Shown here: positions 19,366 through 42,700 of the stretch, one piece after another
Numbering within the stretch: the stretch's first letter is position 1
How the letters are laid out: the number at the start of each line of letters is the position of its first letter
Source: Caecitellus pseudoparvulus
Taxonomy: Eukaryota > Protista > Bigyra: Bicosoecida
NCBI GenBank assembly: GCA_965644315.1
Contig: CBFFRQ010000056.1
Location: forward strand, 310,001-374,000
Length of the DNA stretch: 64,000 nt
Reading direction: 5' to 3'
Translations under genes and position numbers: made by a program
The notes under the pieces: model-generated
The model's database searches: none
Told to the model about the DNA's origin: nothing
Seen by the model: only the letters and a program-made list of their open reading frames with translations

Positions 19366-20567
19366 ATGATCAATTTCCGCGCCCTCGCAACACCAGCGGT
19401 GCGGGCAGCGCACCGCCACATTGGGTTTTCCACGGCGGCGGCTCGTGCCATTGACGTGCGAAGTGATACAGTGACCCAGCCCAGTGCCGGCATGATTATG
19501 GCAATGATGGACGCGCGGACGGGTGGGAAAGCGCGACCGGGTGCTGCTGCCCGCCTGGCTCCTGGTACGCCCTCCTTTGCTGCCTTGCAGGAGATGATGT
19601 CTACGGCGAAGACCCCTCCATCAACGAGTTGTGTCGAGTGGCTGCAGAGACTCTTGGGAAGGAAGCGGCCCTGTTTGTTCCTTCCGGGACGATGGGCAAT
19701 CTGGTCAGCTTGGCTGCCCTTGCAAGTGGCAGCGGCCTCGGGTCCGAGGTGCTGGTGGGGGACGAGTCACACATCTACCACTACGAGCAGGGGGGCATGA
19801 GCACCTTGCTGGGATTATCGCAGCACGTCGTTCGCACTGCCCCAGATGGAACGCTTCCGCTTGAGGAGGTGGCAAAGGCCTGCCGGCCAGATGATGCACA
19901 CTACGCTCGAACCACCGCGGTGGCTGTGGAAAACACACACAATCGGTGCGGCGGGCGAGTTCTACCTCTAGAGTACATGCAAGACCTTCGGGACCTGGCA
20001 GATGAACGCAGCTTGAGCGTGCACGTGGACGGAGCACGCCTGTTCAATGCTGCTGAAGCCTTGAGCGTCCCGGTGTGGAAGCTCGCTTCCTGTGCAGACA
20101 CTGTGACTGTGTGCCTGTCCAAGGGACTGGGGGCGCCCGTCGGATCCGTCGTTGCGGGAAGTGCCAGCTTGATCGCGCAGGCTCACCGCACGAGGAAGAT
20201 GCTGGGGGGGGGCATGAGGCAGGCCGGCTCACTCGCAGGCGCCGGCCTTTTCGCTCTGCGTGAGAACGTTAGTGGACTTGCGCGAGACCACAAGAATGCT
20301 CGCATGATGGCGAAGCTGCTGGGCGCGTGCAAGTTCATTCACGTGGACGCTGCAGCTGTTGAAAGCAACATCGTCTACTTCGACGTGCCTGGTCTGGACG
20401 CGGAAGCTGTTGTGTCCGCCGCAAAAGCTGAGGGAGTCTTGCTGAGCTCTTATGGCACGAGCCGACTGCGACTGGTCACTCACCTTCAGGTTTCTGACAC
20501 TCAGGCTGAGCGAGTAGTGGACGTGTTGGTGAAGGCTGTGGAGGAGGTGGCGCAGCAGCAGCAGTAG
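19366..20567 (+). CDS. Low-specificity L-threonine aldolase (PLP-dependent, GLY1/LtaE family), probable mitochondrial presequence; exons 19366-19522, 19591-20567
   Basis: IDVRSDTVTQP...G|DDVYGEDP, ALFVPSGTMGN, ENTHN, HVDGARLFNA, CLSKGLGAPVGS (PLP lysine), RKMLGGGMRQAG. Confidence 0.95.
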
Positions 20568-23500
20568 GTGTGACAGCATCCCTGTCGCTATCCCGTTTGA
20601 TCATGTCCTCAGCCAGTTGTAGAATGCGCCCAGGGTGCCCACCCACAGCAGCTGCCATTCGCTGAGCGTGTTCGAATGAAATGCCATGATGCTTCACAAG
20701 CTTGGCGCCCAGTCGCTTCCCTAGCAGCCTGCCCGCTGCCTGCGGCGGCAGCCCTCCCAGCGAGTACAGCGTTTCCCCCTCTGCCATTGCTTTGTCTTTC
20801 GTGTGGGGCATCTTCCCATCATCGGTGGAGAGCTGCACCTCTGCTGCCTCCCTTGAAAACCAAGCTTGGAGGACTGGGGCACGGCTCGTGCACAAAAAGT
20901 GCACTCCATGGCAAGCAGTCAGAATATCCACGAGGCAACGCTCCAACCAAGCAGGCGGGGCGTCGTGCGCATCATCCAATACAATGAGCGCTCGAGCAGA
21001 GCGAAAAATGCCTTTGATCATGCGATGTATAGACCTTGAGGACATCCACTTCGTGCCGGGCTGCTCCTCACGTGCAGCTGGCACGGATTGCCTGCGCTCA
21101 CTCGGCCGTGGAGGTGGCGATGGCCCCGCGCCACGGGGGCCTGGCGACGTGGCGCGTGGGCTGAGTCGTTGGCGGCGCCTTTTTCGTCGTCTTCTGCGCT
21201 CATGCGCCGCACTGTGCAGCTGCACAATGCTAGGATTGGTTGTCCACTCGATTGACGCGCCTGTGAGTCCACCGCGAAGCTCGGTACCATCTGAAATGCT
21301 TGCGCTTGCATCAATCATGTGCTGGGCCAAGCGGGCTCGAGCAATCGATTTCGTCACGGCTCCTGCCAGGGGAACAAAAAACACTCCATCATGGAACACT
21401 TGCCGCAAGGCACATGCATGTGCAACCGCTGCAGCGAGGGCTGACTTGCCGACCCCTGCCTCGCCAACGACTGACACAAGTCGACTTTGCGCAAGGAGCG
21501 ACAGGACTGCCTGAGTGCTTGTGTTCCGGCCACCGAATGCCCTAGGCAAGGCAGGGAGAGCCTCTGTCAGCTTTGAAAAGGTCGGCTCGCCGAGATCACT
21601 GAGGCCACCAGCCAAGTATTGCACAGGCTCCGGCAGCAGGCACTGCTGTTGCTGCTCACGCAGGCTCCACTGGCGAGAAAGCACGGCCCAAGAAGCTCCA
21701 AGTGACAGTTTCGGGGTGTCTTTGAATAAACAGGAGTGATGGCACCCACTTGGTGCTTGGTCTTCATGGGGTAGCAGCATGAACAAGCTGGCTTCAGCCT
21801 CTCCTGCAGATTTCATGTTCAGTCGCACAGATTGCCGTCCAGCTTCAAAAGAAGCGGCCACAGGCCAGCCTGAAGCAAGTGCAGCATAAAACGCCGTCGA
21901 AAAGCGAAGCGAGGCTTCGTCACTGACCTTCTTTCCATTCTGAATGCACACGACGTGCTGGATGCCCGCGCCCGCTAGAGCGTCGCCAATCCACTCAGAC
22001 GAACACGCTGCTAGATACACCAAAGACGGACGGTGTGCACTTGTGTCATGTGAGCCTTTCAAGGGCAGCAGCAGTTTATCCAGGTCGCTCTTTCCCACCA
22101 TGTGAGCTTCACCCTGAGCGTTCTCCAACGCCATTCGGCTGGCATCGGCATGGCAGCACAAGTGCAACACAGTCGCACCAGAGTGCAAGGCATGCTGCAG
22201 CGTCTCCATCGTCATGAAGTGAGCTTTAAACCTGATCAGCCTGGCAGCTTTGCTCAAGCCAGCATGCACGGCTGCTCGCTCTGCGCTGATGCCCAACTGG
22301 GCGAGCTCAATGACGTGCCTGGAAGAAGGCTTCAGCACCAATGGGCTGGCAAACAGCCCAATAATCACGTGATGTGCATCGACGAGGTGCGTGTGGACGT
22401 CAACTGCGCTCAGGGGGTTCTTGATGGTGGCCGGGGGCAGAGCACCTGCGGCTGCCTGTAGGGCGGGACTTGTTGGCTCGGGCACGCCAATTGTTGCAGA
22501 TGAAGAAAACCCGACACTCTCCTGCGTCTCACGCGGCACAGCACAGGCTGAAGGACCTGGCTTTGTCCTCAGGACTGCAGTCGGTGTTTGTGCCGCCAAA
22601 AGACGGGTGGGGTCTGCAAGGTCAGTGGCTTTGCTCGATGCGGCGTCACTTGCCGCTGCCTGATGCCTCTGCCGGTTGCCTGCGAGGATGCTGAGGACTC
22701 CTGGTAACTCCATCATATGGAGTGAAGAGTTACCAGCCACATGGCAAAACCAAAGCGTCCCAGGAGATGCATGCAGCGCAGACTGCAGCGCAGGCAAGAA
22801 CCCAGCCGGCAAGAGGTTATTCGACAAATCCATCTCGAGCAGCTTCGGATTGGTGCGGATCACTTCAAGCAAGGCACGAGACGCTGACCACGACGCAATC
22901 CCATTGGCTGCGAGGTCCAAAACCGAGAGTTGGGGCAGTCCAGAAAGTGCCTGTGCGCTGGTGTGGGCTCTCCACGCAGCTGCGGCTGGCTTCAGTACCT
23001 GCAAACAGCTTGATGACAGAAAGTCGCACAAGCCGACGATGAACGCATCCTCCAAACTGTTCAGAGCCATGTGGAGAGCCTTGAATGTGGTCATGCCCAG
23101 CAAGCCTGTGCTGCAAGTCAGCTCGCGCAACGTCAGCAACCCAGCACCGACGGCATTTCGAGACAGATCGAGACACTGCAGCCTCCCAGACGCGGCGACT
23201 GCCTTCAGGATGGCTGCACAGCCTGTGTCACCGAGCATGCAGCCGCTCAAGTCAAGTCGAGTAAGAGCAAGGGACACGGTCAAGCAGTTCAAGCTTGACG
23301 GCAGGCCTTCACTGGCCGCATTGACTTGGTTGTGAATGCAAATATCACAGCCACTAGTAACGTTTTCGAGGAACCTGACACGTCGCCGAGTGTGCATCCC
23401 GGCGGGACTGGCCAGCTCCACCTCTGTGAAGCTGTCCAGAGCTCCCAGGCGTGCCGCAGCCGTGCCGTCGCAACTCGCAGAAGCCAATCTGTCCAGGGTA

Positions 23501-26500
23501 TCCAATACTTCAGCAATGCCTTGCAGAGCCACCTGTTGTGAAAGCCCGGGAGCGCTGACTGTGGGGGCATCAACAAGTGAAAACTCATGCACAGCACCAT
23601 GAGATAGCAAGTGCAAGAAAGCTGCGAACCCTTCCTGGTCCGCTTGCAGGTTCAGGTTTCTGAGGCTGAGACAATGCAAACCAGTCAAGCCTGAGGCAAT
23701 GCTCCCATTCGTTCGCGGAGAGGGAATAGGCTGACTCAGCGCTTGACATAAGCGCCTTGCAAACTCAGCCACTTCCGGGGTCGCGGAAGCACACCCTTGC
23801 GCACCCGTGCTCACGTTGGCAAGCTGGAGCACCTGCAAAAACACTGTCCGCACTGCTGCAGCGGCTCTTTCCCATGACCCTTCCAGAAGTCTGCAAATCG
23901 CGCTTGATGGCTGAGCTCCACCTGCGATGCCGTCCAGGCAAAGAGCACCGCAGAAGGGTGATAGGCAAAGGGCGACAACCTGCGGCAAGGCATGCATCGA
24001 TTCTTCAAAGGACCTGGAATGGGAGAGCACTGGGAGGCCGGGGGTGGGCTCAGTGAAGTCCGTTCCGGTGCGAGGCCGACCTGCTGGGGCCATGTCTGAG
24101 GCCGGGTCTGTGTGAGATGATGCTGGTGGCAACCTCACGCGCGGGGGCACCCCGGCATGGTAAGCTGGGTCAACAAGAGTCACTGCCACAAAGCACTGCC
24201 GCAAAAAGCGTTCTTCGAACAGCCTTGGGGCCAGCACATTTTGCACGAAACCCGGCTCTGCGACGAACCTCCTGGGGTTCTCCAACAAGAAGCCTTGAAA
24301 ACATGAGGTCTGGTCCAGGAGAGCCTGCCACACTCGCACACGTTCGTACACATCAACGGCATGGAAATCCCATGTGTGCTGTGATCCCCGCATCGGCCTC
24401 GCGGGAAAACGACATGCAGCCAGAACAACGTGGCAGTCAAAGGAGGTCGCCGGCAGTGGGAGCACAAGCAAGGGTGCTGCCGCGCCCACTGAGGCGGGAA
24501 CTCTAGGGAAGAGCATCCGTTGAACCAGCCGGCTTGGACACAGGCGTCGGAGGAAGAACATGAGAGTTGCAGACCAGAACCCTTGGCATAGAACAGATGC
24601 TAGCTCGGCGTCAACCAAGCTTGGCTGGTGGCCTTTCAGAGCCTCTGCGTCTTGCCATGTAGGTGGGTCAGGAATCCTGCTTGACCCCCGAACAGTGGAA
24701 GGCGGCCCTGCACAGGTTTCATCGACAGTGGAGCCAGTACCCAACAGTTGGGTTGCTCGAATGAAAACTTCACGTGCGGTTTTCACGATCTCCAGGCTTG
24801 TCACTGGCGGTTGACCCCCAGCAAGAGGGCGCCGCAACGGGCTTCCTGTGATGAAACGACGAAGTCCCTGCACCTCGGAGTGCGCAGGGCAGGATTCAGA
24901 CTGATCAAAACCTGACACATTGTGGTGCAGCAGGGATACAGCAAGAGCCAAGTGCGCCGCCCACTCTTGCCCAGCTTGACTCTCCAGCTCTTCTGGCCCC
25001 CCGCACACTCTCAGCAGGTCTTGCAGGTTTGCTGGGGAGTCAGCCAGGAGAACTTCGGCTGTGGCACGGTCAGAAAACAAGGCATGCATAGGCACATCAG
25101 AGAAGTGGGGGCAAGCCCCGAGTACTTCTTCTGCAGCCCCAGCCAAGCATTGCTCCCAGGCCTCCTTCCACTCCACGCTGATCCCAGGAGCGTGGTCTCC
25201 AAGGAGGTACTGCCCATGAAATCCGGTGTCCTCGCATGTAAACCAATGCTCAAGAAGCGAGTTCAAGGCTTGAACGCCGGAGAAACTGCCAGCTGAGGAC
25301 GCCAGTGCCAGATGGGCAGCCCCAACAGCCACCTCTGGTGTGGACTGCCAAGAAAAAGAATGACCTTCTGAGAGAGCAACAGACAGAGCAACCTGCTCAA
25401 GTAAAGAAAGGGGAAAGCCAGAAGGGTCTTCCTGCTGTGGCAATGCGCTGCCCCGCGTTGCATCGAAGAACTGGGCCAGGGCGAGGAATGGCGTTGGTCT
25501 TGCTTGAGGTGGCTGGGCGGCAAAGTCCCTGGGCGCGAAAACTCCGGGAGCATTGTTCATGGCAGATGCAGCGAAAATTGGCTGAATCCAAGGAGCAGCC
25601 ACGCTTGGGAGCACGGCACCGGCAGCCCACTTGTGAAAAGCTTGCGCGACTCCAGCCACTGCAACGCTAGGGATGATTGGGGACACCCTTGCCCTTCCGG
25701 GCATGAACGTGCGGAATAAAGTCCCGAAGACAGCTGCTTCGATGCACTCCATAAGAGCTTGCGCAAACGTTGTAAATAAGGACTGATCATGCGTGGCTTC
25801 TGTTTCGGTCACAGCCCGGGCACCGGGCGCATCCTCAGCCATCCAACGCGAGAGGTGAGGGAGTAAGCACCGACACAGCATCATGTTTATGCACATGGTA
25901 GACCTGTCCATGGTGCGCTTTGATTGTTGCAGTTGGGACCTCACCACTCGCAGCACTCTTTCTGGTTGCAGCGCCTCGAGTTCCCCGTTTGAGGCAAAGC
26001 AAGAATGAGGGACCCAGACTCCGGCATATCCGAGCAAGCCGACAAGGGCTTGTTGTCGGATTGGTTCGTGTTTTGAATCCAAGAGGGCCAGAAAAAGTGG
26101 CACGAGACCAATTTGGTAAACAGTGGCAAGGGATTCAGGGCTGGGCACAGTCACCTGAGGAAGCCCTTCCCCTTCATGGACCAGGCCGCTGCTGAGGAAA
26201 GGCACCCCGTTCGAGACTAACCAACGCTGCAGAAGGACAGCAAGCTCCGGTGGTGGCTCAAATGTCAATTCTGGCGCCTCATGAAGCAGGTCCTTTAAAG
26301 ACCGGGCAGGCAGGGCAAGAAACGAGCCAGAAGGTGGTCGCAGAGCTTTGAGAGCGGCAGAAATGCTTCTGGCCACTGGAAGCATGTGGCCGCGGTGCAA
26401 CAAGCTGGCAAACCCTGGCTGGCTACTCGGCGCCGCCCCTCCAGGACCGTCGAGGACACCGAGCTCCCTCGGCAATCGCCAAGACCACTCGGCTGGCATC

Positions 26501-29500
26501 GTACCGAGGCAAAGAGAGTGAAAGCGCGCATTTTGCACACTCTGGGCAAGGGCAGTTGTTGCGAAGCGAGCGACTTCAATGTTTGGGCAGCATGAAAGCC
26601 GAATTGCAGTGGTGAGCCACGCTGCAGAGGGGAATGGGCTGCCAGCATTGGGTGGAATGGGGATCAATGCAGCCCGCAACTGAAGAGCTGCACACTCCCT
26701 GTGCATGCGCATTTCAGCAGCAAGACAAGACGCTATATGAAGTTGGGACTCAAGCAAAGCTGCTTCCGAAAGGCCAAAAGCCCACTCATGGTATGACAGT
26801 CGATATGCGTCACCTCTGCTGGCTGACATAGCCAGTGACCGAAAAGATGAAGCAGGCTGCTGCAGCTTGTGGGGAGTGCGCTCATCGTCTTCCATGTCAG
26901 AGCTGCTCATTCCCGATGCCCCAGATGCGTCTGAGGCGTCCGTTGAGTCTGCATGCATGTGCATGGAGTCCAAAACGACCCCGTGAGCGACGACCAGAGG
27001 ACCGCTGCTTGGAGTGTACGGCTGTGCAGCAGCCACTGGCACGAAGCTGTCCCATTCAAAGAGACCACCTTGCTTCAATGCCTGGATGGGGGAAAGCTGT
27101 GTGCATAGTCTAGGGGACGACAAAAGGCAATGGAAGGCCACAGGCGTGTCAGATGCGGCGTGGGCCCGCAGAAAGCTGCGCACACTGCTAGCTGGAAAAA
27201 CCGCTGCGCCGAAGGGGCTGAAGAAGACTCCCTTGACATCTATTCGACCCGAAGGATGGCGCGTGGTCAAGTACCTGAGCACCACGTCCTGCAGCTGCGG
27301 AGTGGCCAGCTCGCACACTTGGACTTGATCTCCGGCTGGCATGTCACCTGCCACGGAATCCAGTACAGTTTGCAGAGCGGAGTCTCTTGCCTGTCCAGCA
27401 TCAGAGCCATGACCACCAAGGCGATCTTTGTCAGCAAAAGGCTGAATCAAGAACCCACGTTGGCACTGCAGGACTGCGCTGCCTGTCGCGCTGGCGCCTG
27501 AGCACCACAGCGCATGCGCAGGGAACCTGCGGCAGACAATTGCCGCCGCAGACCATGCTGGCAGGAAGACATGAGGTGACAAATGGCCCAGGCAGCATTC
27601 GAGGGCCGCAGCACTACTCAAAAGCCACTGCGTGTGGGGCGAACTCCCGTCACGCCCGGTGCGCAAGTGCTGCAGAAGAGCGGCCAGGATCCGGACGCTT
27701 GGCAAAAAGGAATCATCCTGCAGACTGTCAGAACACAGTTTTATCCAGCTGCGGGCGAAAAATGAAGAGTCAAATATGCACACCTTGGACTGCGGCTGTA
27801 CAGCCTCTTGAAGCGCGACTCGCTCAGACAGATAGGCGGAGTGGTGGCGACCAGCAAGCACTTCCAACACGCGTGCCGCATCGCTGGAGGCCATGCAATC
27901 GTGCCACTTCCGTGATATGCAGTCTTTGAGCAGGCCAGCCAGTCTGATAGCGGTGTCTTGCCTTCCTTGGAGCAGGTGCAGGATCGTGGGAGCAGCCGTT
28001 CTTGAGCGGAGCGCATTCTCAACTGTGCCAAGTAGGAAGGGGACAGCAGCGGACGAGTTGGCAGAGTAGGGGTTCCCTAGCCACATGTGAGGAATGAGAA
28101 CCCCACCGGGAGCAACTCCGCCCATGCAGGATCGCAGGACTCTCTGTAGCCTCCACCACCAAAACCCAGCACAGTTTTCTGAATCTGTGCTCGTCTCCGC
28201 TTCGAAAAACCATGATGGAATGCCACTTTCCGGCACTCCAACGGAATCTTGTGACGAGATTGCAGGGTTTGACACTTGCAGTGCGCTCCGCACAACGATC
28301 CGCTCAACATCCTGTGCGGGGATCGCGTCAGTATCGGACAACCCACGAACCATGGCCGACTGCACAGCACAGCGAAGGAACCTGTGCGACGTTGGGACCA
28401 CCGTGTCTCGAAACCCAAGGTCCCGTAAGTGGCTTTCATCGGCCACATAAACGGCTGGGCTGAGGGCACAGCCGCCGCCAGTGCTGTCCACTTCGAGCTG
28501 GGCCAGGCACCAACTCACCCGAAGCATGGTCACATGCTCAAGCAAGGCCGGGAGCAAGTCAGAGCTGAGGAGAATGCTGATCAACTGATTCCAGAGAGCT
28601 AGGGGATCCGAAGATGATTGGCTGCCGGCATCGTAACTTTTCGAGGGGTGCAATGTCCACTTCCACAACAGCCGTGTGACCTCCACCACCATGTCTTGCG
28701 ACAGGCATGCCAGACGCGTCACCCTGACTGCAGTGTGGATGATGTCGCCATCGAGCAGCAGCGAATGGGAGGCTGGTGATGCTGCAGCGTCTGCAAGAGC
28801 CCCAAGTGCAGAAGTCAGCGCTCTCTGCCGCGCAACAGCCCCAAGCAGGCTTGACGCTGTTCCCAACCGAGCTGGCGAGGGGTGTGCGGCGGGCCCGAGC
28901 AAGCTGTCCCCAGCATGGCTCTCAGTTTGGTCCAAGCAATCCACAAGGTCTTGTCCAACAGCGCACAAGGCAGGCACAGCTGAGTCAATGAAGCGCGCAA
29001 AGTACGACGAGTGGCGTGAAGACACGGCTGCGGCGGCTTCGGGCCCCGCCGGGACTTCTCGCGCGGCACCGCCCCTCACTCGGTGGCGACTCAGGGCAAT
29101 GTCCATCAGGGACTGAAACCCCCGCAGCACTACAAGCAGTCCATCTGCATCCAGAGGTGTGTTTTCTCTTGGCTGAAAACCAAAGAGATCAGCTGCAACG
29201 GAGACCACCTGAAGGCCGGCCTGAGTGGTGGGCGGTGGCCAGCAATGGTTGGTGGGGATCCGCTGCACCCCACAGGCCAGAAGAGCAAGGACGAGACACC
29301 AAGAAATCAACTGCAAGTCTCGATCCATGAGGTGCTTCGAAAGTAAGCGCACGTCACCCTTTAGGACCAGAGTGGCAGCTGCGACGCCGGACAGGACGGA
29401 GAGATCCACGGCCGCGTGATGGCCGGAGCGAAGATGGGTACGGACGATCATCAAAAGGGAGGAGAGAAGACCACACTCCAGGAAGTCATTGCACACTGAG

Positions 29501-30360
29501 GGAGTCAGCGAGGCAAGCAATGCGTGCCAGCCAATAGCTTGCTGGTGAGGGGGAAGGTCCGGGTGAACGTGGTCGAGTGCAGCTTCACTGATTCCGAGCT
29601 CAGCAAGCTGGGTGAATACGTCCACCGAAGGCTGAGCATCCACGTGTCCTGAAGCAGTTTCGAAGTCCGCTGCTGCCTGGGTTTTGGGGAGAGCAGGCAA
29701 CACGCCGGCCTTCAGCGGGGGCCTGGCGAACTGAGTGGGCTCCCCCAGAAAGCTGAAGGGCGCCTTGTCACCAACGCTTCCTCCGGGTCGCTCTACTAGG
29801 CTGAAGCGTTGCTCAGGGCTGCCAAAGCTTGCTGCTGCGTCCGTCTCCCATAGGTCGAGCTGCTGCGAGTCACCCCCAATCGTCGAGTGAACGTCGCCAC
29901 TCCACTGCACGAGGTGGTCCATGGAAGCCGCTGTGGGACTGGAACCTGCAGGAACCGGCGATTCAGGTCTGCTGGACTCATGCCCACTCCCACTTAGAGT
30001 GCCTGGTGACCCCGATGCAGCTGTCTGTGATTGGGACGAGTCCCGTGCACGCAGCTGGTCGGAGAGGCGCTGCAGAAGCTCCATCTCTGCGCTACCCCAA
30101 GCTTCAGAAGCCCTCTGAGTCAATCCATCAATCTTATCAAGCACTGCTTGTGTTTCCATGCACCCCACCTGGGGTGCTTGACTTGCAGCCTGTCGTGGAC
30201 TGCCTCCCACAACGCCAGACTGCGCCTCTCTCAGGGTTGCGCAAACACCTAGAAGACGCTCCTGCAACGCTCCAGGGGAAACGGAACAACTTGCATCTGC
30301 TAGCCACGTGGCTAGCTCATCGATCTGGTCAGCTGCCGCCGTTCTGGAAGCACCAGACAT
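20476..30360 (-). CDS. Giant (3294 aa) multidomain protein: helical N-terminal region, RI-type LRRs, CHAT (caspase/HetF-like) domain and C-terminal STAND/NB-ARC-like P-loop NTPase
   Basis: Single uninterrupted ORF. LRRs: LTRLDLSGCMLGD, LQCLDLSRNAVG, LSVLDLAANGI, LLEMDLSNNLL. CHAT: VLHLCCHA...LVYLAACSS...D.ASLRFSTAFYAALASG. Walker A GEAGVGKS, Walker B ALIVLDD, FLCTSR, GGHP. Confidence 0.85.
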   Translation of the reverse strand: MSGASRTAAADQIDELATWLADASCSVSPGALQERLLGVCATLREAQSGVVGGSPRQAASQAPQVGCMETQAVLDKIDGLTQRASEAWGSAEMELLQRLSDQLRARDSSQSQTAASGSPGTLSGSGHESSRPESPVPAGSSPTAASMDHLVQWSGDVHSTIGGDSQQLDLWETDAAASFGSPEQRFSLVERPGGSVGDKAPFSFLGEPTQFARPPLKAGVLPALPKTQAAADFETASGHVDAQPSVDVFTQLAELGISEAALDHVHPDLPPHQQAIGWHALLASLTPSVCNDFLECGLLSSLLMIVRTHLRSGHHAAVDLSVLSGVAAATLVLKGDVRLLSKHLMDRDLQLISWCLVLALLACGVQRIPTNHCWPPPTTQAGLQVVSVAADLFGFQPRENTPLDADGLLVVLRGFQSLMDIALSRHRVRGGAAREVPAGPEAAAAVSSRHSSYFARFIDSAVPALCAVGQDLVDCLDQTESHAGDSLLGPAAHPSPARLGTASSLLGAVARQRALTSALGALADAAASPASHSLLLDGDIIHTAVRVTRLACLSQDMVVEVTRLLWKWTLHPSKSYDAGSQSSSDPLALWNQLISILLSSDLLPALLEHVTMLRVSWCLAQLEVDSTGGGCALSPAVYVADESHLRDLGFRDTVVPTSHRFLRCAVQSAMVRGLSDTDAIPAQDVERIVVRSALQVSNPAISSQDSVGVPESGIPSWFFEAETSTDSENCAGFWWWRLQRVLRSCMGGVAPGGVLIPHMWLGNPYSANSSAAVPFLLGTVENALRSRTAAPTILHLLQGRQDTAIRLAGLLKDCISRKWHDCMASSDAARVLEVLAGRHHSAYLSERVALQEAVQPQSKVCIFDSSFFARSWIKLCSDSLQDDSFLPSVRILAALLQHLRTGRDGSSPHTQWLLSSAAALECCLGHLSPHVFLPAWSAAAIVCRRFPAHALWCSGASATGSAVLQCQRGFLIQPFADKDRLGGHGSDAGQARDSALQTVLDSVAGDMPAGDQVQVCELATPQLQDVVLRYLTTRHPSGRIDVKGVFFSPFGAAVFPASSVRSFLRAHAASDTPVAFHCLLSSPRLCTQLSPIQALKQGGLFEWDSFVPVAAAQPYTPSSGPLVVAHGVVLDSMHMHADSTDASDASGASGMSSSDMEDDERTPHKLQQPASSFRSLAMSASRGDAYRLSYHEWAFGLSEAALLESQLHIASCLAAEMRMHRECAALQLRAALIPIPPNAGSPFPSAAWLTTAIRLSCCPNIEVARFATTALAQSVQNARFHSLCLGTMPAEWSWRLPRELGVLDGPGGAAPSSQPGFASLLHRGHMLPVARSISAALKALRPPSGSFLALPARSLKDLLHEAPELTFEPPPELAVLLQRWLVSNGVPFLSSGLVHEGEGLPQVTVPSPESLATVYQIGLVPLFLALLDSKHEPIRQQALVGLLGYAGVWVPHSCFASNGELEALQPERVLRVVRSQLQQSKRTMDRSTMCINMMLCRCLLPHLSRWMAEDAPGARAVTETEATHDQSLFTTFAQALMECIEAAVFGTLFRTFMPGRARVSPIIPSVAVAGVAQAFHKWAAGAVLPSVAAPWIQPIFAASAMNNAPGVFAPRDFAAQPPQARPTPFLALAQFFDATRGSALPQQEDPSGFPLSLLEQVALSVALSEGHSFSWQSTPEVAVGAAHLALASSAGSFSGVQALNSLLEHWFTCEDTGFHGQYLLGDHAPGISVEWKEAWEQCLAGAAEEVLGACPHFSDVPMHALFSDRATAEVLLADSPANLQDLLRVCGGPEELESQAGQEWAAHLALAVSLLHHNVSGFDQSESCPAHSEVQGLRRFITGSPLRRPLAGGQPPVTSLEIVKTAREVFIRATQLLGTGSTVDETCAGPPSTVRGSSRIPDPPTWQDAEALKGHQPSLVDAELASVLCQGFWSATLMFFLRRLCPSRLVQRMLFPRVPASVGAAAPLLVLPLPATSFDCHVVLAACRFPARPMRGSQHTWDFHAVDVYERVRVWQALLDQTSCFQGFLLENPRRFVAEPGFVQNVLAPRLFEERFLRQCFVAVTLVDPAYHAGVPPRVRLPPASSHTDPASDMAPAGRPRTGTDFTEPTPGLPVLSHSRSFEESMHALPQVVALCLSPFCGALCLDGIAGGAQPSSAICRLLEGSWERAAAAVRTVFLQVLQLANVSTGAQGCASATPEVAEFARRLCQALSQPIPSPRTNGSIASGLTGLHCLSLRNLNLQADQEGFAAFLHLLSHGAVHEFSLVDAPTVSAPGLSQQVALQGIAEVLDTLDRLASASCDGTAAARLGALDSFTEVELASPAGMHTRRRVRFLENVTSGCDICIHNQVNAASEGLPSSLNCLTVSLALTRLDLSGCMLGDTGCAAILKAVAASGRLQCLDLSRNAVGAGLLTLRELTCSTGLLGMTTFKALHMALNSLEDAFIVGLCDFLSSSCLQVLKPAAAAWRAHTSAQALSGLPQLSVLDLAANGIASWSASRALLEVIRTNPKLLEMDLSNNLLPAGFLPALQSALHASPGTLWFCHVAGNSSLHMMELPGVLSILAGNRQRHQAAASDAASSKATDLADPTRLLAAQTPTAVLRTKPGPSACAVPRETQESVGFSSSATIGVPEPTSPALQAAAGALPPATIKNPLSAVDVHTHLVDAHHVIIGLFASPLVLKPSSRHVIELAQLGISAERAAVHAGLSKAARLIRFKAHFMTMETLQHALHSGATVLHLCCHADASRMALENAQGEAHMVGKSDLDKLLLPLKGSHDTSAHRPSLVYLAACSSEWIGDALAGAGIQHVVCIQNGKKVSDEASLRFSTAFYAALASGWPVAASFEAGRQSVRLNMKSAGEAEASLFMLLPHEDQAPSGCHHSCLFKDTPKLSLGASWAVLSRQWSLREQQQQCLLPEPVQYLAGGLSDLGEPTFSKLTEALPALPRAFGGRNTSTQAVLSLLAQSRLVSVVGEAGVGKSALAAAVAHACALRQVFHDGVFFVPLAGAVTKSIARARLAQHMIDASASISDGTELRGGLTGASIEWTTNPSIVQLHSAAHERRRRRKRRRQRLSPRATSPGPRGAGPSPPPRPSERRQSVPAAREEQPGTKWMSSRSIHRMIKGIFRSARALIVLDDAHDAPPAWLERCLVDILTACHGVHFLCTSRAPVLQAWFSREAAEVQLSTDDGKMPHTKDKAMAEGETLYSLGGLPPQAAGRLLGKRLGAKLVKHHGISFEHAQRMAAAVGGHPGRILQLAEDMIKRDSDRDAVTPTAAAAPPPPQPSPTRPLLAQPECQKPEGE

Positions 30361-33710: not shown

Positions 33711-36700
33711 ATGGAAACTGCAGATGCGGTGGCGAGCGTGGAGGCACCCGCAGACTATTCCGAGAAGGAATTACAAAAGCTGAGGAAGGCGGCACTTAAG
33801 TCTCTACGCGCCAAAGAAAAGGTATGGACTGCAGTGTGAGGCCTTCAGCGCCTGCCCGCGCCCGATCCATGATCGGTTCGCAACAACCAGGCCACTGCCA
33901 CCTGCCCTGCTCCCGCAGAGACGGAAAGCAGAGCACAAGGCTTTGGCTCGGAAGCTCAAGTCCCGTGATGAAGAGGAATCTATCCTTGCTGCTCAAGCTC
34001 CGGTCGACCTGGACTTCCTTCGCAACGGCGGTGGCATGGAGGTGTACTGCCGGCTGGTGCTGTCCAAGTCCCCCAGGGTCGCTCTCGCAGGCTTGAGGGC
34101 CCTGGAACGCATCCTGTGCCCGGATGTGGAAGAGTTCAGCGCGCCCCCTGCTTCTTGCGTGGACAAGGAGCTCGAGCGCCAGTGCCCTGCTTCTGCGGCA
34201 GATGCGGTGCTCTTGCTGCAGACAAGTGAAGCTGCTGGCAAGTGGAACTCGCTCGACTTGTTCGCTCGCCACTTCAGAAGCCACCATGAAACTCTCGTCC
34301 TGCCTGCTCTGCGCTGTTTTCGTGCAGTGGTCGCCAGCGTGGCAGCCCTTCCCCTGGACAACCCTCACCGATGGCGGTGGATGGCGGTGGTGTTGACTGC
34401 GGGAGACCCCCTCCCGGCCCTGCTCGAGGTGCTGGCGACGGGCATCGCAGCCGAGCAGAGTGGGGCACATCGTGCATTCAAAGCAAGGCAGGCTCTTGCC
34501 AAGTCCCTGGCGCTGCAGGCCCTCAAGGAAGCAGACGCCCCCACACCAGGCGAGCCGGGGCACGACCCTGCCTTGATGTCTGCCGCGCTAGGAGCCGCCA
34601 CAGAGCACCTCTTGGGCGCTGCGGAGGGATCTCGCAAGTCCCAAGCTCCTGTGCCGCCACCGGGCCCTGAAGCAGTCCTCGAGGCGGCACGTGCCTTGCG
34701 AGTCCTGTGCGCTGAAGTGTTCCACCCCTTGCGCCAGCCAGCCCACAAAGAGGGGGCGGCAGAGAACACAGCCCGCGAGGCCCTGGCTGCTGCCGCCTAT
34801 GGCCAAGCCATCGACTCAGCCCGGGTCAAGCTGGAGCGATTCCAAAAGCCACGGGCCGCTTTGGCGGAAGGTGCGGCAGAAGCACCTTCGACAAGCGTGT
34901 CTGCAGGCGCCGCTGCTGAAGGCGCTGCGCAGTCAAGCCCAGCTCACGAACAGGACCACGCACAAGAAGATGACCGTGCGTTGGACTTCGCAGATGCAGA
35001 CGCCTTCTTGGGCCCCCAGCTGGAGACTGAGGAAGGGGCAGATGACATTGAAGAGGCGCTGCTGCTGGTGTCGGAGGGATCGGACGCCGTCCTGCGCCAC
35101 TACGGGCAGGCTTTCCTGTTCCAGACCGAGGCGCCTGATTCGGGAGAGTCTGGTGGGGCTTCCCTCGCCTCTGATGCTGCTGCTGCTGCTGCTGAACTTG
35201 CTGGGACAGCTGGCGCAGTCGCTACTTTGTTGGGGCAAGCCAGCGAATGTGGCCGCTTGCGCACCTGCAGTGCGGCGGTGGTCACTGCTGATGGCTTGAC
35301 TCTGCCTCGTCCGGATGCCGAACCAGCACGCTGCAGACCTGACCTAAATGGTTTCAGCAGGGTTGCTCTTGCGCTGGGGGGCGCACAAGAGGATGGCACG
35401 GTGGCAAACACTGACCTTGCGGGAATGGTGGCTCCCCCTCACCCCGCCAGAGTTCCCGCCCTGAATTTGCTGCGCAGTGAAGTTGCGCTGCAAGGCATCC
35501 CTGAAGATGACTGGGATCTCACGGGGATGGAGGTGCTTTGCGGCTTACTAAACTACTCGGTGCTGCCTGATGCAGCCACAAGTACAGAAGCATCGTGGGC
35601 CACAGACACCGTGTTGGCACATGTCTCTGAGACGCTGGAGTCACACATGTCCTCGGCCACCGATGAAGCAGTTGAGTCCACACCACTGCCCGCGCTGGGC
35701 TCAGAGCGCTGTCTGTTAAGTGCCCCGCTTTCCGCTGCCAAAGCTTCGGCCCTGCAGCGCAAAATTCGCCAAGTGGGACTCGCACTGCTGTCAGACACGA
35801 CATTTGGCGCCAGTTTGTCGCGCAGTTGGCACAGTACAGCTGTGCTGCCTCGCTTGCTCGCGAGCCTGCAGCATCTCAAGCATCAACTGGCACAAGCAGT
35901 GCTGGCCGTCAAATACTCCAGGTTGAAGGCTGGGCAAGCCCGCGGCTTGGCACCGAAATCAGCAAGGGCCTCGCCTCGCAGCGCTAGCAAGGGGCGACGA
36001 AGCCCTTCGCCGACATCTGGCAAGCGAGAAGGCAAGCGCCGGAGTGCAAGCCCTCGCGGCCGCAGCCCGGACCGCCATCCTGATGGTGAACATGCTCCGG
36101 AAGCTTCAGCAGAATTGACGCCACAACCAGGGGACGCCGACTGGTCTCTCCCTGATGGAGTATGCTTTGACGATGTCCCGGGGCTGGATCGTTCGGTGGA
36201 GGAAGAGCTTCTCCGTGAATACCAAACAGAACCCCCGCCCTCATGCAGCAAGTCCCCGGCGGACAGATTCCTGGCAGAAACCTGTGCGGCCATTCAGCAT
36301 GGCCTTAACGCGGCATACAGGCTGTGCTGCGGGCTGCAGAGCGACGAAAGCAGTGTACGAGGTCAGCAAGCTGCTGCAGCGCGTGCGTTGTCTCGATTTC
36401 AGAGGGCAGCTGCGGCAGCCAGCGTTACCGGAGATTCAGCAATCACAGTGCTGCACTCGGGCATTGCCCAGGAAATGGCAGCTGCATCCGCAGCAGTGTC
36501 AGCTGTGGAATCTCAGTTGCCCCCAGCCGATTCCTCTGCAAAGAAGAAGAAGTCCAGTTCCGGGAAGGAGAAGCGGAAAGCGGGCGTAGCCGGTGACGAT
36601 GATGAAGGCAGAGACAGCCGCGCTGACCGCATTGCAAGGGCAGAGGCTGAGGCTCGCCACCGAATGGGGTGGCTGAGAAGTCAGTATGGGGCTTGGATTC

Positions 36701-39700
36701 CCGAGGAAGTGCTCGCGGCGGCTGAAGCGGCTGACGTGGAGGAGGCTCAGCGCTTGATGTCTGCGTCAGAAGAGCATGCGCAAAGTCACTCCGCCGGCTC
36801 GGCTGCCTCTGAAGACGTCTCACAGCTTGCGGTGGGGATGACCCGCATGCTTGGTGGCCAGCTGCCACCAGATGGCTGCCGTCCGCCTTCCCTGCTGCAG
36901 GGAGCCGAGGATGACCTGCGCCAAGGGGCAGCAGATGACAGCTGCGCGGAGCGCCAGCGGGGCTGGCTGCTGCAGCTCATGGTCGTAGCCTCACAATTTG
37001 CAGCCTGTCCGTATGACGAGAAAGTGGAAAGTGTTTTGAGAGCAGGCATGGGGCTCATGCGAGGTTTGCTGTGGGGAGGGGCGGAGGTGGTGCTGGATGG
37101 TGATGGCAAGTCGATCAAGGCTCTTCAGCTGGGTGCCGGTGCATTTGGCTGCGGCGATGCGTTTCGAATGGCTGCTCTGGAAGAGGCGAGGGTGCTTCCC
37201 GCTCTCTTTGGGATCTTACGTCACCCAATGGCGCCTTTACACGTGCGCGACGAAGCTGAGGCGACTCTACACCTTCTCATCACTTTCTGTGAACCAGTAG
37301 TGGTGGACTCTTCCCTGCGTGCGCGAGAGGTAACGATGGCGCAGGGCTCGTCACCTGAGCCACCTTCGACGGATGAGAAGCCAGGCCTCGCCTCTCGCGA
37401 CGTTTCGGCACTGCTTGCCCGCCTGCAAGAAGAACTACAAACGCAGAGCAGCTCCGCCAGCGTCGCTCAGCAGGACTTGCTAGAAGTGCTCAAGCAGACT
37501 ATGGCCCGGGTTGTTCCGGCGGACGACCCCCACCACCCACTGTCGAGGACGGCTGATGAAGTTGCGCCCATGCCTGCCTTGCCGGGTGAAGAGCTCTCCC
37601 CTTGGCGTGTCGGTGGTGCTGGACAAGTAGGCTACCGGAACGGCTCCTTGCTACCTTCCATGGCACCTTCGCTGGGCCACTTCCCGGCTGCGTATGTCGC
37701 TGGCGGCTCAGTCGACCCTCGAGTGCTCGCACCACACGATGATGTGCGTCTCGCAGCGGAGGGTCAACTCCCATGGCATGCTTGGATGGCGGGCTCGTCC
37801 CTCGCGGCAGCTTACGGGGCTTTTCAGCATGCGGAGGCGGATGCCACCCCTTTTTCCCCCAAGCTCCGGCAGGGAGGCAGCCCCTTAGGACGATGGCTTG
37901 GTGCAGCTGACATCCTCGCCTTACTTGTGGCGGATGCCTTTTCAAGCTTTGTGCGGGTACTTCGGGGCGGGGTGGCCTTGGGCGACCCAGTCGATGCGGC
38001 TGCGGAAGGGGCCGAAACGCCCCTCCCGTCTGACGGCCTTCCTGAAAGCGTTGGCCATGCTTTGCAGCTCATGCTGCAGAGAGCAGGGGGCGTAGCTGAT
38101 GAGCCTCTGGAAAAGGCCAGCGGGCCTCAAGCTCCAGAGAGCGGAGAAGGTGATGGGGCGGATTCACGCTCGCTGCCCTCGCCTCGAGTCAGTGTTTCTC
38201 TCCAGCTCCTCGCCTCTTTCGCGCGGGCTGCGCACGAAGAAGGCATGCCAGCAGACACTTTGCTTTCCCTCGCCAATACCCTGTACAAGTATTCACCTGG
38301 GAGTCACAGCTTGATGCTCAGGTATCCGGACCCCGAAAGCTTGTCGGAGCACCCTTTCCCGCCCCCAGCTGATGCCGACGCTGTTGCAGCTTTAGATGAA
38401 GCCGCAGCAGCCGGAAAAGGCAAGAAGAAAAGGCCTAGCTCCATGCCTGCAGCTGGAGGCGCTGAGGAGGTTAGCCGTGACCCTGGCGTTGCTCGCATGT
38501 CTGAGCTTGCGCGAGATGCACAGCTGCTGCTGGCGGCTACGATTGGGGTCCCTTTGCCCGCCGATCCGCACGTATTGCATAGCAGAGTCCAAGACCCTTG
38601 GGTATGCCGCATGCTTGAGAGCTCGTTCCAAGGCGGGGACGTAGATGAAGTGGAAGCCGAGGCGCTCATTCGCATGGTACTGCCTGTCCTGGCCGTCCCG
38701 CCGATCGCCAGCCCAGACCCGTCCATTTCCTTCGGCGGGCCGGAGCGGAAAGGCAAGGACAAGAAGAAAGACAGAAAGAAAGCCCCTGGCTCAAAGTCCT
38801 CCCAACAAGGGACAGATGATGGCGAAGATGCCTCGGCTGCATTCGATGCTGTGGCCCGCCTGTTACGAGGTGCCTCTGGGGCAATGGTGGGCACAGTGAG
38901 CTGGGCGGTTGATACGCAACTGCGTGGAACACGATTTGTGTTTGCTCTGCTTCAAGGCGTTGCGTCGGGGTCTACACCTGTTCAGAGCAGCGCAGCAACC
39001 TTGGCGCATTTCCTGGCGGGAGCGGGGGTCACTCCACTGCTGCTACGCGCGGTAGTTGGCAGTTTGACGACCACAAAAGGCGAAAGCTCAGCGTCTGGAG
39101 CGGGGGTTGCGACTGAAATGCCAGTGCCAGCATTCGTTCCGGGGCTCGCTGGCGAGTCTGCTTCGGTTGGTGGCGAGCTTGGCTCCTCGCCTTCGGTCGC
39201 CACAGGAAATGCCGACGCCAAAGCAGAGCTCTGTGCTCTCAGCTGTATGGCCTTGAGCGTGCTATTGAGACTCAGTCCGGTCGCTGCTGCCCATGCCGGC
39301 ACACTCGCGTCCAAAGTGGTGCCTCGGCTGGCTGGGGAAGTCCAGGCACCGTCACTGAGGCGCGTGGCAGTCCTCAAGGCATGGCATGCGATCGGCATTC
39401 CCGCTTCCCCCCACCCCTTCATTGTGCCGCAGTCGGCGGGGAGCGGCTTTTCAGCGTTCGAAAAGTCTGGTCGCTCCTCGGCAGCCATGGCCAGGAACGC
39501 GGGCCTCACAGCTGTTTTTTCACCAGTCTCCCTGCCGGAGTGTGCGCTGGACGTGCTGTGTGCCATGGCAGAAAGCGACGGCTTGCATCGGAGTGTGCAT
39601 AGCAAGCGGCTCACCCCGGCCCTGCAAGCGGCAGGCCAAGAAGCGCTGGCAGTTGTCTTTGCGCAGGGCATGCCTGCGGCTGCAGACAAACCTTCGCCGC

Positions 39701-42700
39701 GCAGCAGGGCTGAAAAGTCCCCAAAGTCTCGCGGCTCGAAGAGTCCAAAGGCGAGCACAGCAGATGCTGCGAGCCCACCGCCACAGGTCCACTCGGATGG
39801 TGTGGATGGTGCTGTGCCATCGTGGTCACCTGGCTATGCTGCGGGGCGTGCCGTTGTGCTGCAGGTGCCGGGATTGCTGCAGACTAGCACAAACGCGTCC
39901 CTGATTGCTCAACGTGGACTCAGATTTTCGTGTGCTTTGCTTGCCACTGTTGCTGCTGCTCTGCGCGTGCCAGATGCCAAGGAGCTTTTGCTGTCGATGG
40001 GGCTTGAGCGCTGCACGGAAGCTTGGTGGGCACAGGTGACAGACCTGCGGACAGCCTTGAACACCCTTGCCAGGGAAGCCCATGCAGGGTACACGCGATT
40101 GACAGAGCCCGCAGGGGTTGTCGACGAGGCAGCAGCTTCAAGCATGCCTGCATGGATGCTTGACGCCCAAGCAGAGGCCATCCGCAGGCAGCACCTTCGA
40201 GACGCAAAAAAGTGTCAGCAACAAGCTGCTAACCTCTTGCAGCGCTCTGTTGACACGCTCTTCCCCACGTCAGTGGGTCCCTGGGCTTTCAGCAGCCTCG
40301 CGTCCATCACCAGCGGTGAAAGCTGCGAGTGGCCTGCCATACCTGCCGAAGACTTTACGCTTGGAACCCACAACATGTCCACGGATGAAGATGTGCGCGG
40401 GAATGTCAAGTCTCCTCGGAGCAGTCGAAGAGTACCAGGTAGCCGCCGAGAGGTGTCGAGACGGGCGTCTCGATCGCCTGAAGGGAAGCACAGCGGGCCA
40501 ATGCTATCAGATGCTGCCCTTTGGGGTTTGCGATTGGAGCCCAGCCACCCTGTCATGGAGGAGGATATGGACAGCTTGTGGCTGCAAGGCGGCGACTTTG
40601 CAGGCTCTTTTGCTCCATCGATGGTGCAGCTGACTGCTTTACTTCCGCCTGGCGTGGAAGTGGATCGGTTTGTTCCGGCAGATGGGAAGAAGAGCCCCCG
40701 GAGCAAGAAGGGGAGAAGTCCCAAGGCGGCAGATCACGGCTCAGTTCCACCAAGCAGTGGTCCAGGAGTCTGGACCGCTTTCCTCCCGCAGGATGATGTG
40801 GGCGATGGCTCGGGCGACTCTGACGAGATGGACAGCCCAGCTCTGGCATTGAGAAAGGCTGCTGATGCTTGGCGAGAAGTTCAGGCTGCTGTACGAGGAG
40901 TTGGCGCACTGCTTGCGACCGCATCTCGGGGCGATGCCTCGTGCCCTTTGCGCCAACCACGGCACTTCTCATTGACACCAACGCAACATGCCATGCAATC
41001 GCTCGTGCAGCTGCAAGTGCTTTCTTGTACTGGTTCTGGAGTGGATGATGCATCAGCCTCTGGCAAGTTGCCTCCTTGGGCGGCTCTTCAGAATGACACG
41101 GTTGAGGCATCACTTGCGGCCCCCGCCGTTGACTCTGGGGCTCGACTCCACTCTGACAGTGTAGAGGGTGCTGCCAAGGGTGAGGCTGAGCTTTCAGCCC
41201 TTGAAGTGGCACAGTCTCATGCTGACTGGGGCAGCTTGACGCCTGTAGAGGCATTGCGAGAAGCCTCTCGCTGCGGCTTTGCGACAGACCTGCTGGAGTT
41301 GCTGCTCGTCCAGCCGCTGTGCAGCCCCAGTGGTGCCGGGCACTTGGCCCCACTATCCCTTGCTTGCGCTATTGCGCCGCTTGATGGAAGCGTCGCAGTA
41401 GGTATGGCACACGTGTGCCAGCTGGTCGTCGCCTCTGTCGGTGTGCTGTGGGGTGCGGCCGTGGATCAGCACCGATCCCTTGGCAGCCAGAGCGTTGTGT
41501 CTGACGCTATTGCTGCGGCAGTCGTCCGCTCAGGCGCACTTGTGCAGCTGGTGTCCCTCTTGGATCCACTTCCTCAACCTGAACTGGCCAACGACTTGCC
41601 TGAAGTGCTGGACTTTGACACGTGGCAGCAGCAAGTGCAGTCAAGCAGGCATGTGGATGAGCAAGGTCTCGAAGGAAGCTCAACAGAGTCAACAAGCTTG
41701 GATGACCGAGCCGCCATCCTCGCGTGGTCTGCGGTGCTTGCAAACTATGATGAGTTTGTGAGATGTTCCCAGGGAGCTCACGCCATTGCTGCGGCTGAAG
41801 CGTGCCAGCCGCCTGCTACCGGGCGCTCAGCACCTCCGCAGGCCTTGTCATTAGAATTGCAGAGTGAGTGGCAGGCCTGTCTGCGGTGCCTGGTAGCGTG
41901 CATTTCTATGAGGGGCGTGCTAAGGGCTGGCCAATGGCAGACAAGCACGGAACTCGTCGAAGTTGATGCAGCAGAGGCAGGCGCGCCGGCAAAGAAGGGG
42001 AAGCGTCACAGTGGTGGTGGGGATGCTGAAGGGTCCCTCCAAAAACGCATGGAGCCGCGAGTTCTCGGGCGTCAGGACCCAGCCATGGGACCGACAGTGA
42101 AGCAGTGGGGCATTTTGCTAAACGCCGCGCAGCCTTGCGCCAGGTATCCGACCCAGGAGTCCCTGGAGCGGCAAGCAACCTCCAGGCCAGCATCTGACCA
42201 GCAACTCCTCGCTGAAGCAGTGCGCACAGGTTTTCAGCCGTCCATCATGACGCCCCTGCATGCGGCAAGTGCGACAGGTGACCTGTGGGCGCTGTCGGTA
42301 TTGATTGGCGCAAGTGCCAGCAACGCCGGGGCTAGCCTCCTACATGCTGTCAGCGCCACACACAGCGACAGCATGGTCGGCGAAGAGCAAACGTTGCCTG
42401 ACTTGGCTCCCTCTCCGGCGTTGCTGGAGCGCTTGAGCCTTCGTCCTCAGAAGGAACTTGACTCCATGCCCGCTGGCTTCCACCCTCTTTGTGGCGTGGA
42501 TGTCAACGCTCGAGATGATGCGGGGCGGTCGCCTGCCATTGTGGCTCTGACCCACGGGCATGTACATGCGGCTTTGGCTCTCCTTGCTTGTGGTACAGAT
42601 GTTGATAGCGCTGACAACGCAGGAAGGCCGCTTTTGAAGTTTGCACTGCTAGCCCCAGATCAAGGCGCTTTCCATGCCGTACAAGGAGCTGCAGAGCACC

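Follow-up and report, generated by a model that had tools for sequence, protein, structure and literature searches.

A window of 64,000 nucleotides from the bicosoecid Caecitellus pseudoparvulus (assembly GCA_965644315.1, contig CBFFRQ010000056.1, positions 310,001 to 374,000 of the forward strand) carries on its minus strand a single giant gene for a protein combining leucine-rich repeats (LRRs), a CHAT protease domain and an NTPase module. The contig, C56 in the genome-wide comparisons, belongs to a 30.6-Mb assembly of 215 contigs with ~60% GC. An inspection of the letters alone, referred to here as the original prediction, had described an NLR-like immune or cell-death receptor in permuted order, encoded by an intronless open reading frame (ORF) of 3294 codons. 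This frame was verified at positions 20476..30360 (minus strand, as are all features of the gene given below). It comprises 3294 codons plus the stop codon, has zero internal stops and starts at the first ATG, just four codons downstream of the point at which the frame opens. The motifs named in the prediction, namely, FGGR, the Walker A motif, LIVLDD, CTSR and GGHP of the NTPase as well as LHLCCHA and LAACS of the protease, were all recovered at their positions. The product, plausibly cytosolic, is a giant consisting of a helical, partly armadillo-like region of ~2200 amino acids, ribonuclease inhibitor (RI)-type LRRs, a disordered linker, the CHAT domain, and a nucleotide-binding domain (NBD) with helical domain 1 (HD1).

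The gene recurs in other genomes. Two copies of 98% identity are present on metagenome scaffolds (P0001, P0003); on one such scaffold the product is again 3294 aa long and free of indels. Two distant relatives of 3014 aa (P0002, GenBank assembly) and 2956 aa (P0004, JGI/ENA metagenomes) are 27-30% identical to the gene product. Both retain LRR, CHAT and NTPase in this order. The predicted arrangement within one ORF, which in the studied protein has intact putative catalytic and nucleotide-binding residues, is kept in two further lineages. In all three lineages the gene stands tail-to-tail with a Beta_elim_lyase (threonine-aldolase-like) gene, and the three genes are therefore regarded as positional orthologs. 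Comparison with the 98%-identical strain revealed 47 synonymous and 47 nonsynonymous differences, corresponding to an overall dN/dS of 0.34. By segment, and on small counts, the ratio is 0.08 for CHAT, 0.11 for the LRR, 0.23-0.58 for the N-terminal region and ~1.3 for the linker, where seven nonsynonymous differences stand against two synonymous ones. The gene is under purifying selection.

A frame of 9.9 kb that stays open in a genome of ~60% GC and, without indels, in a second strain is difficult to reconcile with a gene-model artefact, in which the ORF would merge at least two genes or hide an in-frame intron (e.g., at residues 3020-3115). Such an artefact is very unlikely, even though other genes of the genome do have introns, the paralogs on contigs C18 and C43 are matched piecewise, and the neighboring aldolase ORF lacks the first 37 profile positions. 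The two orthologs keep open frame and domain order despite their low identity, the linker between LRR and CHAT is free of stops, and a search for the same domain order in other protists, as the original prediction had proposed, returned relatives that include complete transcriptome ORFs with LRR, CHAT and NTPase together on one mRNA. The CHAT-NTPase gene is a real single gene.

The N-terminal region (residues 1-2219; 23704..30360) is fast-evolving and mostly helical, and no Pfam domain was matched in it at E≤5. Its homology to P0002 and P0004 is weak yet collinear, with ~20% identity, and exceeds that of 200 local-shuffle decoys. An armadillo (ARM)-type repeat was located at residues ~1410-1447 (26020..26133), where a three-ortholog profile matches designed ARM proteins and importin-alpha (whole-sequence E 8e-5 to 1e-2) and where G1418, P1421, L1426 and L1427 are invariant in the orthologs. 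A profile search of residues 1150-2340 against the PDB yielded this single ARM repeat, while nothing was matched with residues 1-1150. Language-model neighbors of the region are HEAT/ARM families, which is taken as a lead only; an AlphaFold2 (AF2) model of residues 1150-2340 from a four-sequence input is helical but, with a mean confidence score (pLDDT) of 27.8, unusable. Probably, the N-terminal region is in part an ARM/HEAT-like solenoid. A degenerate Sec7-PH module at residues ~1700-2020 had also been considered and was dropped, being unsupported by Pfam.

The RI-type LRR region (residues 2220-2543; 22732..23703) was assigned from structural comparison and from an AF2 model that takes in the C-terminal 1100 residues and draws on a family alignment of 139 rows. 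Residues 2365-2534 form a confident strand-helix solenoid of ~6 repeats (pLDDT 85-94), which resembles ribonuclease inhibitor (VIA Z 17.4) and the LRRs of NLRP3 (16.5), the NLRP3/NOD2 range being 15-16.5. Model and structural matches thus bear out the predicted repeats, though the Pfam score of LRR_6 in the 3294-aa protein (22.3 bits) is just under the cut-off of 23.4; the ortholog P0002 passes it with 27.8 bits. A low-complexity linker (residues 2544-2655; 22396..22731), predicted to be disordered (pLDDT <50), connects the LRR to the protease.

The CHAT protease domain and the truncated NTPase

The caspase-fold CHAT domain extends over residues 2656-2894 (21679..22395), as assigned by Pfam, Foldseek and VIA. 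Pfam CHAT (PF12770) matches residues 2691-2849 with E 5e-10 and 39.7-40.8 bits at a cut-off of 24 bits, and in a genome-level CHAT profile search the gene scored 43.4 bits. In the AF2 model, the alpha/beta domain is confident at residues 2689-2894 (pLDDT ~90). Its closest solved structure is that of the SAVED-CHAT protease 8tl0 (Foldseek E 1e-8; VIA Z 23.2 with a root-mean-square deviation of 2.5 Å over 203 residues), which is also matched by the family profile (E 8.7e-16); further structural matches are Csx29 (TPR-CHAT) and gingipain RgpB (Z 14.1). The putative catalytic residues are His2737 within LHLCCHA (residues 2732-2738; codon 22150..22152) and Cys2786 within LAACS (residues 2783-2787; codon 22003..22005). 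Cysteine occupies its column in all 139 family rows and histidine in 136 of the 139. The two columns align to residues 355 and 402 of the 8tl0 chain, equivalent to native His375 and Cys422, with a spacing of 47 in both numberings. In SAVED-CHAT, the H375A/C422A mutant is inactive and the dyad residues are ~4 Å apart in the active filament (8tl0). Judged from the alignment, His2737 and Cys2786 constitute an intact putative catalytic dyad, and a CHAT domain equipped with it, as had been predicted, is thus supported by profile score, fold and conserved columns alike.

The NB-ARC-like NTPase (NBD plus HD1) comprises residues 2934-3272 (20545..21561), as delineated by the family profile and VIA. 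Pfam places a P-loop NTPase match at residues 2944-3139. With a 654-aa C-terminal piece, AAA_16 (37.1 bits) and NB-ARC (25.3 versus a cut-off of 23.5) both score above their cut-offs, and NACHT, with 26.6 versus 26.7 bits, lies at its own. The NACHT and NB-ARC matches cover mainly the P-loop part (NB-ARC model positions 17-71 of 248), while positions 18-212 are matched in the relative P0026. In the AF2 model, a Rossmann-like domain and a helical bundle are found at residues 2934-3272, broken by a low-confidence insertion, with confident HD1 helices at residues ~3206-3262. The family profile matches AfsR (E 7.5e-13), wheat Sr35 (1e-10; residues 205-400) and Apaf-1 (4e-7; residues 117-356), on which grounds the NTPase was placed in the NB-ARC/AP-ATPase branch; in each case the alignment ends with HD1. 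Placement in this clade, though not taxonomy, was helped by a word-indexed search with the family profile, the hits of which were for the most part NB-ARC-TPR regulators of bacteria (AfsR/SARP, adenylate cyclase and HTH fusions); with the 654-aa piece, whose prefilter was flooded by low-complexity words, such a search gave no hit. Structurally, Apaf-1 is closest (VIA Z 16.6), followed by Dark, CED-4, NRC4, NRC3, ZAR1 and Roq1 (~15).

The nucleotide-binding motifs were assigned by alignment. Walker A, GEAGVGKS (residues 2966-2973; 21442..21465), has an invariant G2971, and K2972 is Lys in 106 and Arg in 26 of the 139 rows. Asp3129 of Walker B, LIVLDD (residues 3125-3130; 20971..20988), is Asp in 120 rows. 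At the last position of the sensor-1 region CTSR (residues 3157-3160; 20881..20892), Arg is the commonest residue (53/139), and the proline of the HD1 GxP motif GGHP (residues 3240-3243; 20632..20643), the equivalent of NB-ARC GLPL, is found in 117 rows. FGGR (residues 2942-2945), with F, G and R at invariant or nearly invariant family positions, corresponds to the hhGR(ExE) motif without its ExE part. Nothing in the residues of either protease or NTPase suggests a pseudo-enzyme. Between Walker A and Walker B lies a basic, Pro-rich insertion of ~95 residues (3020-3115; 21016..21303), of low confidence in the AF2 model, in which an Arg/Lys run is followed by SP/PP repeats. Insertions are present at this site in the orthologs, too; the segment could be a loop of regulatory or nuclear-localization-like character; alternatively, it could represent an in-frame intron left unspliced.

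The protein stops 51 residues past the GxP motif, and its last ~22 residues form a short Pro-rich, disordered tail (residues 3273-3294; 20479..20544), so that there is no room for a winged-helix domain (WHD) or a C-terminal sensor. Neither the WHD (ARC2) nor an MHD-type sensor nor a C-terminal repeat array is present in the 3294-aa protein. The original prediction of a STAND NTPase devoid of C-terminal sensor repeats thus stands with regard to the P-loop, Walker B, sensor-1 and GxP motifs and to the missing repeats, yet only the NBD and HD1 of such an NTPase are in place.

It is conceivable that a WHD-less NBD-HD1 pair acts in the monomer, as an intramolecular ATP/ADP clamp on the CHAT site, with conformational activation in the manner of Csx29. 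In Apaf-1 and plant NLRs, both the contacts within the oligomer and the ADP lock depend in part on the WHD, and TPR-CHAT/Csx29 is among the structural matches of the protease. Set against this, the closest solved CHAT protease, SAVED-CHAT, is activated by filament formation, and the relatives of the NBD, i.e., Apaf-1, CED-4, the resistosomes, Cdc6/ORC and MuB, all act as oligomers, which renders a purely monomeric switch unlikely.

The protist family and the repertoire of the genome

With the last 1100 residues as query, HMMER was run exhaustively against 1.84 billion cluster representatives and retrieved 1658 of them at E≤1e-3, of which 507 reached E≤1e-10. Among the best 150 relatives, analyzed by domain-wise phmmer, CHAT is followed by the NTPase in 138, as the original prediction had surmised for other protists. 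The LRR and the huge N-terminal extension, which it had singled out as the unusual parts, turned out to be less exceptional: a detectable LRR precedes CHAT in ~24 of these 150, and more than 800 aa precede it in 34 of the 120 rows of the tree set. The unusual part is found at the other end. When residues after the GxP proline were counted in 116 members, the 32 with more than 800 aa before CHAT had 20-156 of them (median ~30), with 31 of the 32 having at most 76, while the 30 with a C-terminal extension had at least 290, accommodating WHD plus tetratricopeptide repeats (TPRs). The family clearly has two layouts. One is CHAT, nucleotide-binding oligomerization domain (NOD) and TPR; in the other, N-terminal domains such as SPRY, ARM, discoidin or LRR precede CHAT and a truncated NOD. 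Termination of the predicted NOD after HD1 is thus a trait of the family and not an accident of this gene.

In Pfam searches, SPRY, Arm, GAT and LRR_6 were found upstream in the long forms and discoidin (F5/8 type C) upstream in a sister group, and the canonical forms have TPR_12 or TPR_MalT downstream. Named members stem from the stramenopiles Platysulcus tardus, Mucochytrium quahogii, several Triparma species, Aureoumbra lagunensis and the chlorarachniophyte Amorphochlora amoebiformis. The M. quahogii member is annotated merely as "B30.2/SPRY domain-containing protein," and those of Triparma as "CHAT domain-containing" or "NACHT domain-containing." Four members from Mucochytrium and other protists (P0026, P0036, P0061 and P0092) are giants of 2200-3300 aa with the order SPRY-(GAT)-Arm-...-LRR-CHAT-NTPase. 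Literature searches retrieved no description of a CHAT-NB-ARC protist family. The studied gene represents one subfamily of a large, apparently undescribed group of CHAT-NB-ARC fusions in SAR protists.

In trees of the CHAT-NTPase core (FastTree, IQ-TREE), a clade of giant SPRY-ARM-LRR-CHAT-NTPase proteins is set apart from a mixed group rich in CHAT-NOD-TPR proteins. The trio of the studied gene and its orthologs forms a long branch outside the giant clade, near discoidin-CHAT-NTPase proteins; a constrained clade of the trio with the giants is not rejected (p-AU 0.24, LG+G4). The long N-termini of the relatives fall largely into one homology cluster (30/37). A profile of 18 giant relatives matches the pre-LRR/LRR portion of P0002 (1e-7) and P0004 (6e-10), and with the N-terminus of the studied gene itself the same profile did not rise above decoys. 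The ARM repeat and the giant-profile match on P0002 and P0004 lean toward a shared origin of the LRR-before-CHAT order, as opposed to two separate ones.

With the family profile, about four CHAT-NTPase-family loci, no two alike in architecture, and another STAND gene were detected in the genome; the studied gene on C56 is not part of an expanded receptor family. The locus on C43 (C43:645315-650912, minus strand; L007 2316-7913) encodes a canonical CHAT-STAND-TPR_MalT protein (AAA_16/NACHT) of ~1865 aa, and a further CHAT-matching piece upstream of it suggests an intron. A CHAT-AAA_16-SH2 gene resides on C18 (C18:250565-253795; L018 4066-7295), with an SH2 Pfam E of 5e-7; its CHAT is broken into three by introns or frameshifts, and the CHAT-NTPase-SH2 architecture is unusual. 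The remaining family locus is a CHAT-like ORF on C53. The further STAND gene, on C65 (minus strand; L020 2420-7945), encodes a DUF4062-STAND-WD40 protein of 1841 aa (AAA_16/nSTAND1/NACHT) without CHAT and represents a canonical effector-NOD-repeat NLR-like gene.

Other caspase-fold proteases of the genome were also considered. A separase is encoded on C48 (C48:74399-74938, Peptidase_C50 E 2.4e-29, in a 2216-aa frame). The possibility that the CHAT-NTPase gene is itself a divergent separase was discarded, the C50 profile matching the C48 locus and not this gene. For Peptidase_C14 (caspases and metacaspases), no match was obtained in a first-look six-frame search of the genome, a result that is tentative; if they are truly absent, the caspase-fold proteases of the organism would mainly be CHAT proteins and separase. 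Searches with PADLOC defence models gave noise-level P-loop matches only.

The single-copy status of the gene bears on the main rival explanation, namely that of a conserved regulatory protease or scaffold outside immunity, in which the solenoid would position a nucleotide-gated CHAT domain for a role in the cell cycle, at the cytoskeleton or cilium, or in proteostasis. A single-copy positional ortholog beside the same neighbor gene in three lineages, purifying selection and the lack of family expansion all fit such a role, and separase and metazoan TPR-CHAT/TTC28 are likewise giant helical proteins with a caspase-fold domain, TTC28 being tied to cytokinesis and usually present in one or two copies (PMC12314368). 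Opposed to this are the true separase of the genome, an NTPase from the Apaf-1/R-protein/AfsR clade, the very fast evolution of the N-terminal two thirds with their low identity between orthologs, and the exchange among relatives of N-terminal SPRY, discoidin, ARM and LRR domains or of C-terminal TPRs, a modularity known from conflict systems. This explanation is considered possible though rather unlikely; it is nevertheless to be taken more seriously than a gene-model artefact.

In the window, the convergent Beta_elim_lyase ORF (19629-20567, plus strand) has its 3' end antisense to the final 92 nt of the CHAT-NTPase frame (20476-20567). Of the distant orthologs, one has 15 nt between the corresponding genes and the other an overlap of just 4 nt. 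Divergent from the CHAT gene, at 33943-46818 (plus strand), a single ORF encodes a protein of 4291 aa whose ankyrin repeats lie around residues 3140-3180 and 4070-4145; it, too, was found on a 98%-identical metagenome scaffold. These neighbors (the aldolase, the ankyrin protein and others) give no hint of function.

Proposed function and comparison with known systems

The overall best explanation, with a probability of roughly 0.55, would be that of a self-associating ATPase that switches on a CHAT protease in cis. In this scenario, the C-terminal NBD-HD1 modules would self-associate in an ATP-dependent manner, whereby adjacent CHAT domains would be brought together or unlocked and would then act proteolytically on a single substrate or a small number of them. 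Binding of a ligand or partner and autoinhibition would be tasks of the N-terminal solenoid and the LRR. With the WHD missing, the usual autoinhibition by an ADP-locked NBD-WHD pair would be inapplicable, and the N-terminal region or a partner would have to exert control instead. Apoptosomes, resistosomes and SAVED-CHAT filaments are the analogues from which the mechanism is inferred. As its output, regulated cell death or defence appears likeliest, ahead of another kind of proteolytic switch, in view of the parallel with bacterial and fungal CHAT-NLRs.

Several points weigh against this explanation. Cdc6/ORC and MuB are structurally nearly as close to the NTPase as the NB-ARC proteins (VIA Z 14-15.5), and, formally, a module lacking the WHD has more in common with a generic AAA+-like pair of NBD and lid. 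A single-copy gene with conserved synteny and purifying selection is atypical of fast-diversifying immune receptors. The role of the N-terminal portion as "sensor" would follow from its position and from analogy. Finally, gasdermin (PF04598) was not found in the genome, although this is a weak argument, as control genomes gave no match either.

The self-associating CHAT-ATPase thus proposed has counterparts in several known systems. Bacterial CHAT-bearing NLR-like proteins exist. Fungal NLR sensors with a CHAT caspase-like domain have been reviewed (PMC12881547). In these bacterial and fungal proteins (CHAT-NB-ARC/NACHT-TPR/WD40), CHAT is directly N-terminal to a STAND-type NTPase, a feature shared by the gene studied here, and their layout is that of the C43 gene and of many family members. 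The protist gene differs from them in lacking C-terminal repeats and WHD, in possessing a solenoid-plus-LRR portion of ~2500 aa before the protease, and, with the weakness of that test, in the gasdermin partner not being found. The designation "permuted NLR" of the original prediction is accordingly to be narrowed: the putative sensor has indeed moved upstream, the LRR lying ~400 residues before the NTPase and ahead of the protease, whereas NLRs have their repeat sensor C-terminal to the NOD; the succession of CHAT and NTPase, however, is the canonical one of effector and NOD. The gene is a variant within known CHAT-bearing NLR-like proteins, distinguished by a C-terminal, WHD-less NOD with sensor-like modules upstream, a trait apparently not described before and found in many SAR protists.

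With the Apaf-1/CED-4/Dark apoptosome and the plant resistosomes, the protein has in common a homologous NBD-HD1 pair and the coupling of an NB-ARC ATPase to a caspase fold. In contrast to these, its protease is fused in cis instead of being recruited through a CARD, WHD, HD2 and a C-terminal WD40 or LRR sensor are lacking, and the LRR is placed N-terminally. The best matches of the protease domain, with identical dyad columns, come from SAVED-CHAT (8tl0) and from TPR-CHAT/Csx29 of type III CRISPR systems, of which SAVED-CHAT is activated by oligomerization; both are prokaryotic, and their regulators are a cyclic-nucleotide-binding SAVED domain or a Cas7-11-bound TPR, not an ATPase.

Among eukaryotic systems, metazoan TPR-CHAT proteins (TTC28/TPRBK; expanded in corals) likewise carry their CHAT domain at the C-terminus, behind long N-terminal repeats (PMC12314368). 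They lack an NTPase after CHAT, their repeats are TPRs and not ARM/LRR, and they belong to another CHAT subfamily; the comparison is made via the shared Pfam family. Separase has a giant helical N-terminus before a protease of the caspase-hemoglobinase fold as well, whereas the protist protein matches CHAT instead of C50 and carries an ATPase. In brown algae, LRR-ROCO and NB-ARC-TPR proteins are candidate receptors (PMC3341825; PMC11378527 for LRR-ROCO). The LRR-ROCO proteins (LRRK-type, candidate immune receptors) are a stramenopile case in which the LRR is similarly N-terminal to the signaling NTPase; they combine a ROC GTPase with COR in place of NB-ARC and are without CHAT.

A caspase-fold protease and an NB-ARC/NACHT ATPase form the core of animal cell-death and immune machines, and in bacteria and fungi the two are fused. 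As judged from this gene and hundreds of relatives, marine stramenopiles and rhizarians possess many CHAT-NB-ARC fusions. Since the truncated form cannot use the WHD/ADP lock, it amounts to a natural experiment on the minimal needs of NOD-driven protease activation. More speculatively, and with a rather low likelihood, these proteins may constitute a SAR-wide, "inverted" apoptosome-like class, in which a WHD-less NB-ARC module would fire a CHAT protease in cis under the control of exchangeable N-terminal sensors, and which would supply the main death or antiviral executioners in lineages without detectable metacaspase, the present genome being one such case. Should the protein instead prove to be a housekeeping protease, it would still be an uncharacterized, conserved, ATP-gated CHAT enzyme. 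Under the explanation favored here, the family members would be candidate components of pathways for regulated death or antiviral defence in plankton of ecological importance.

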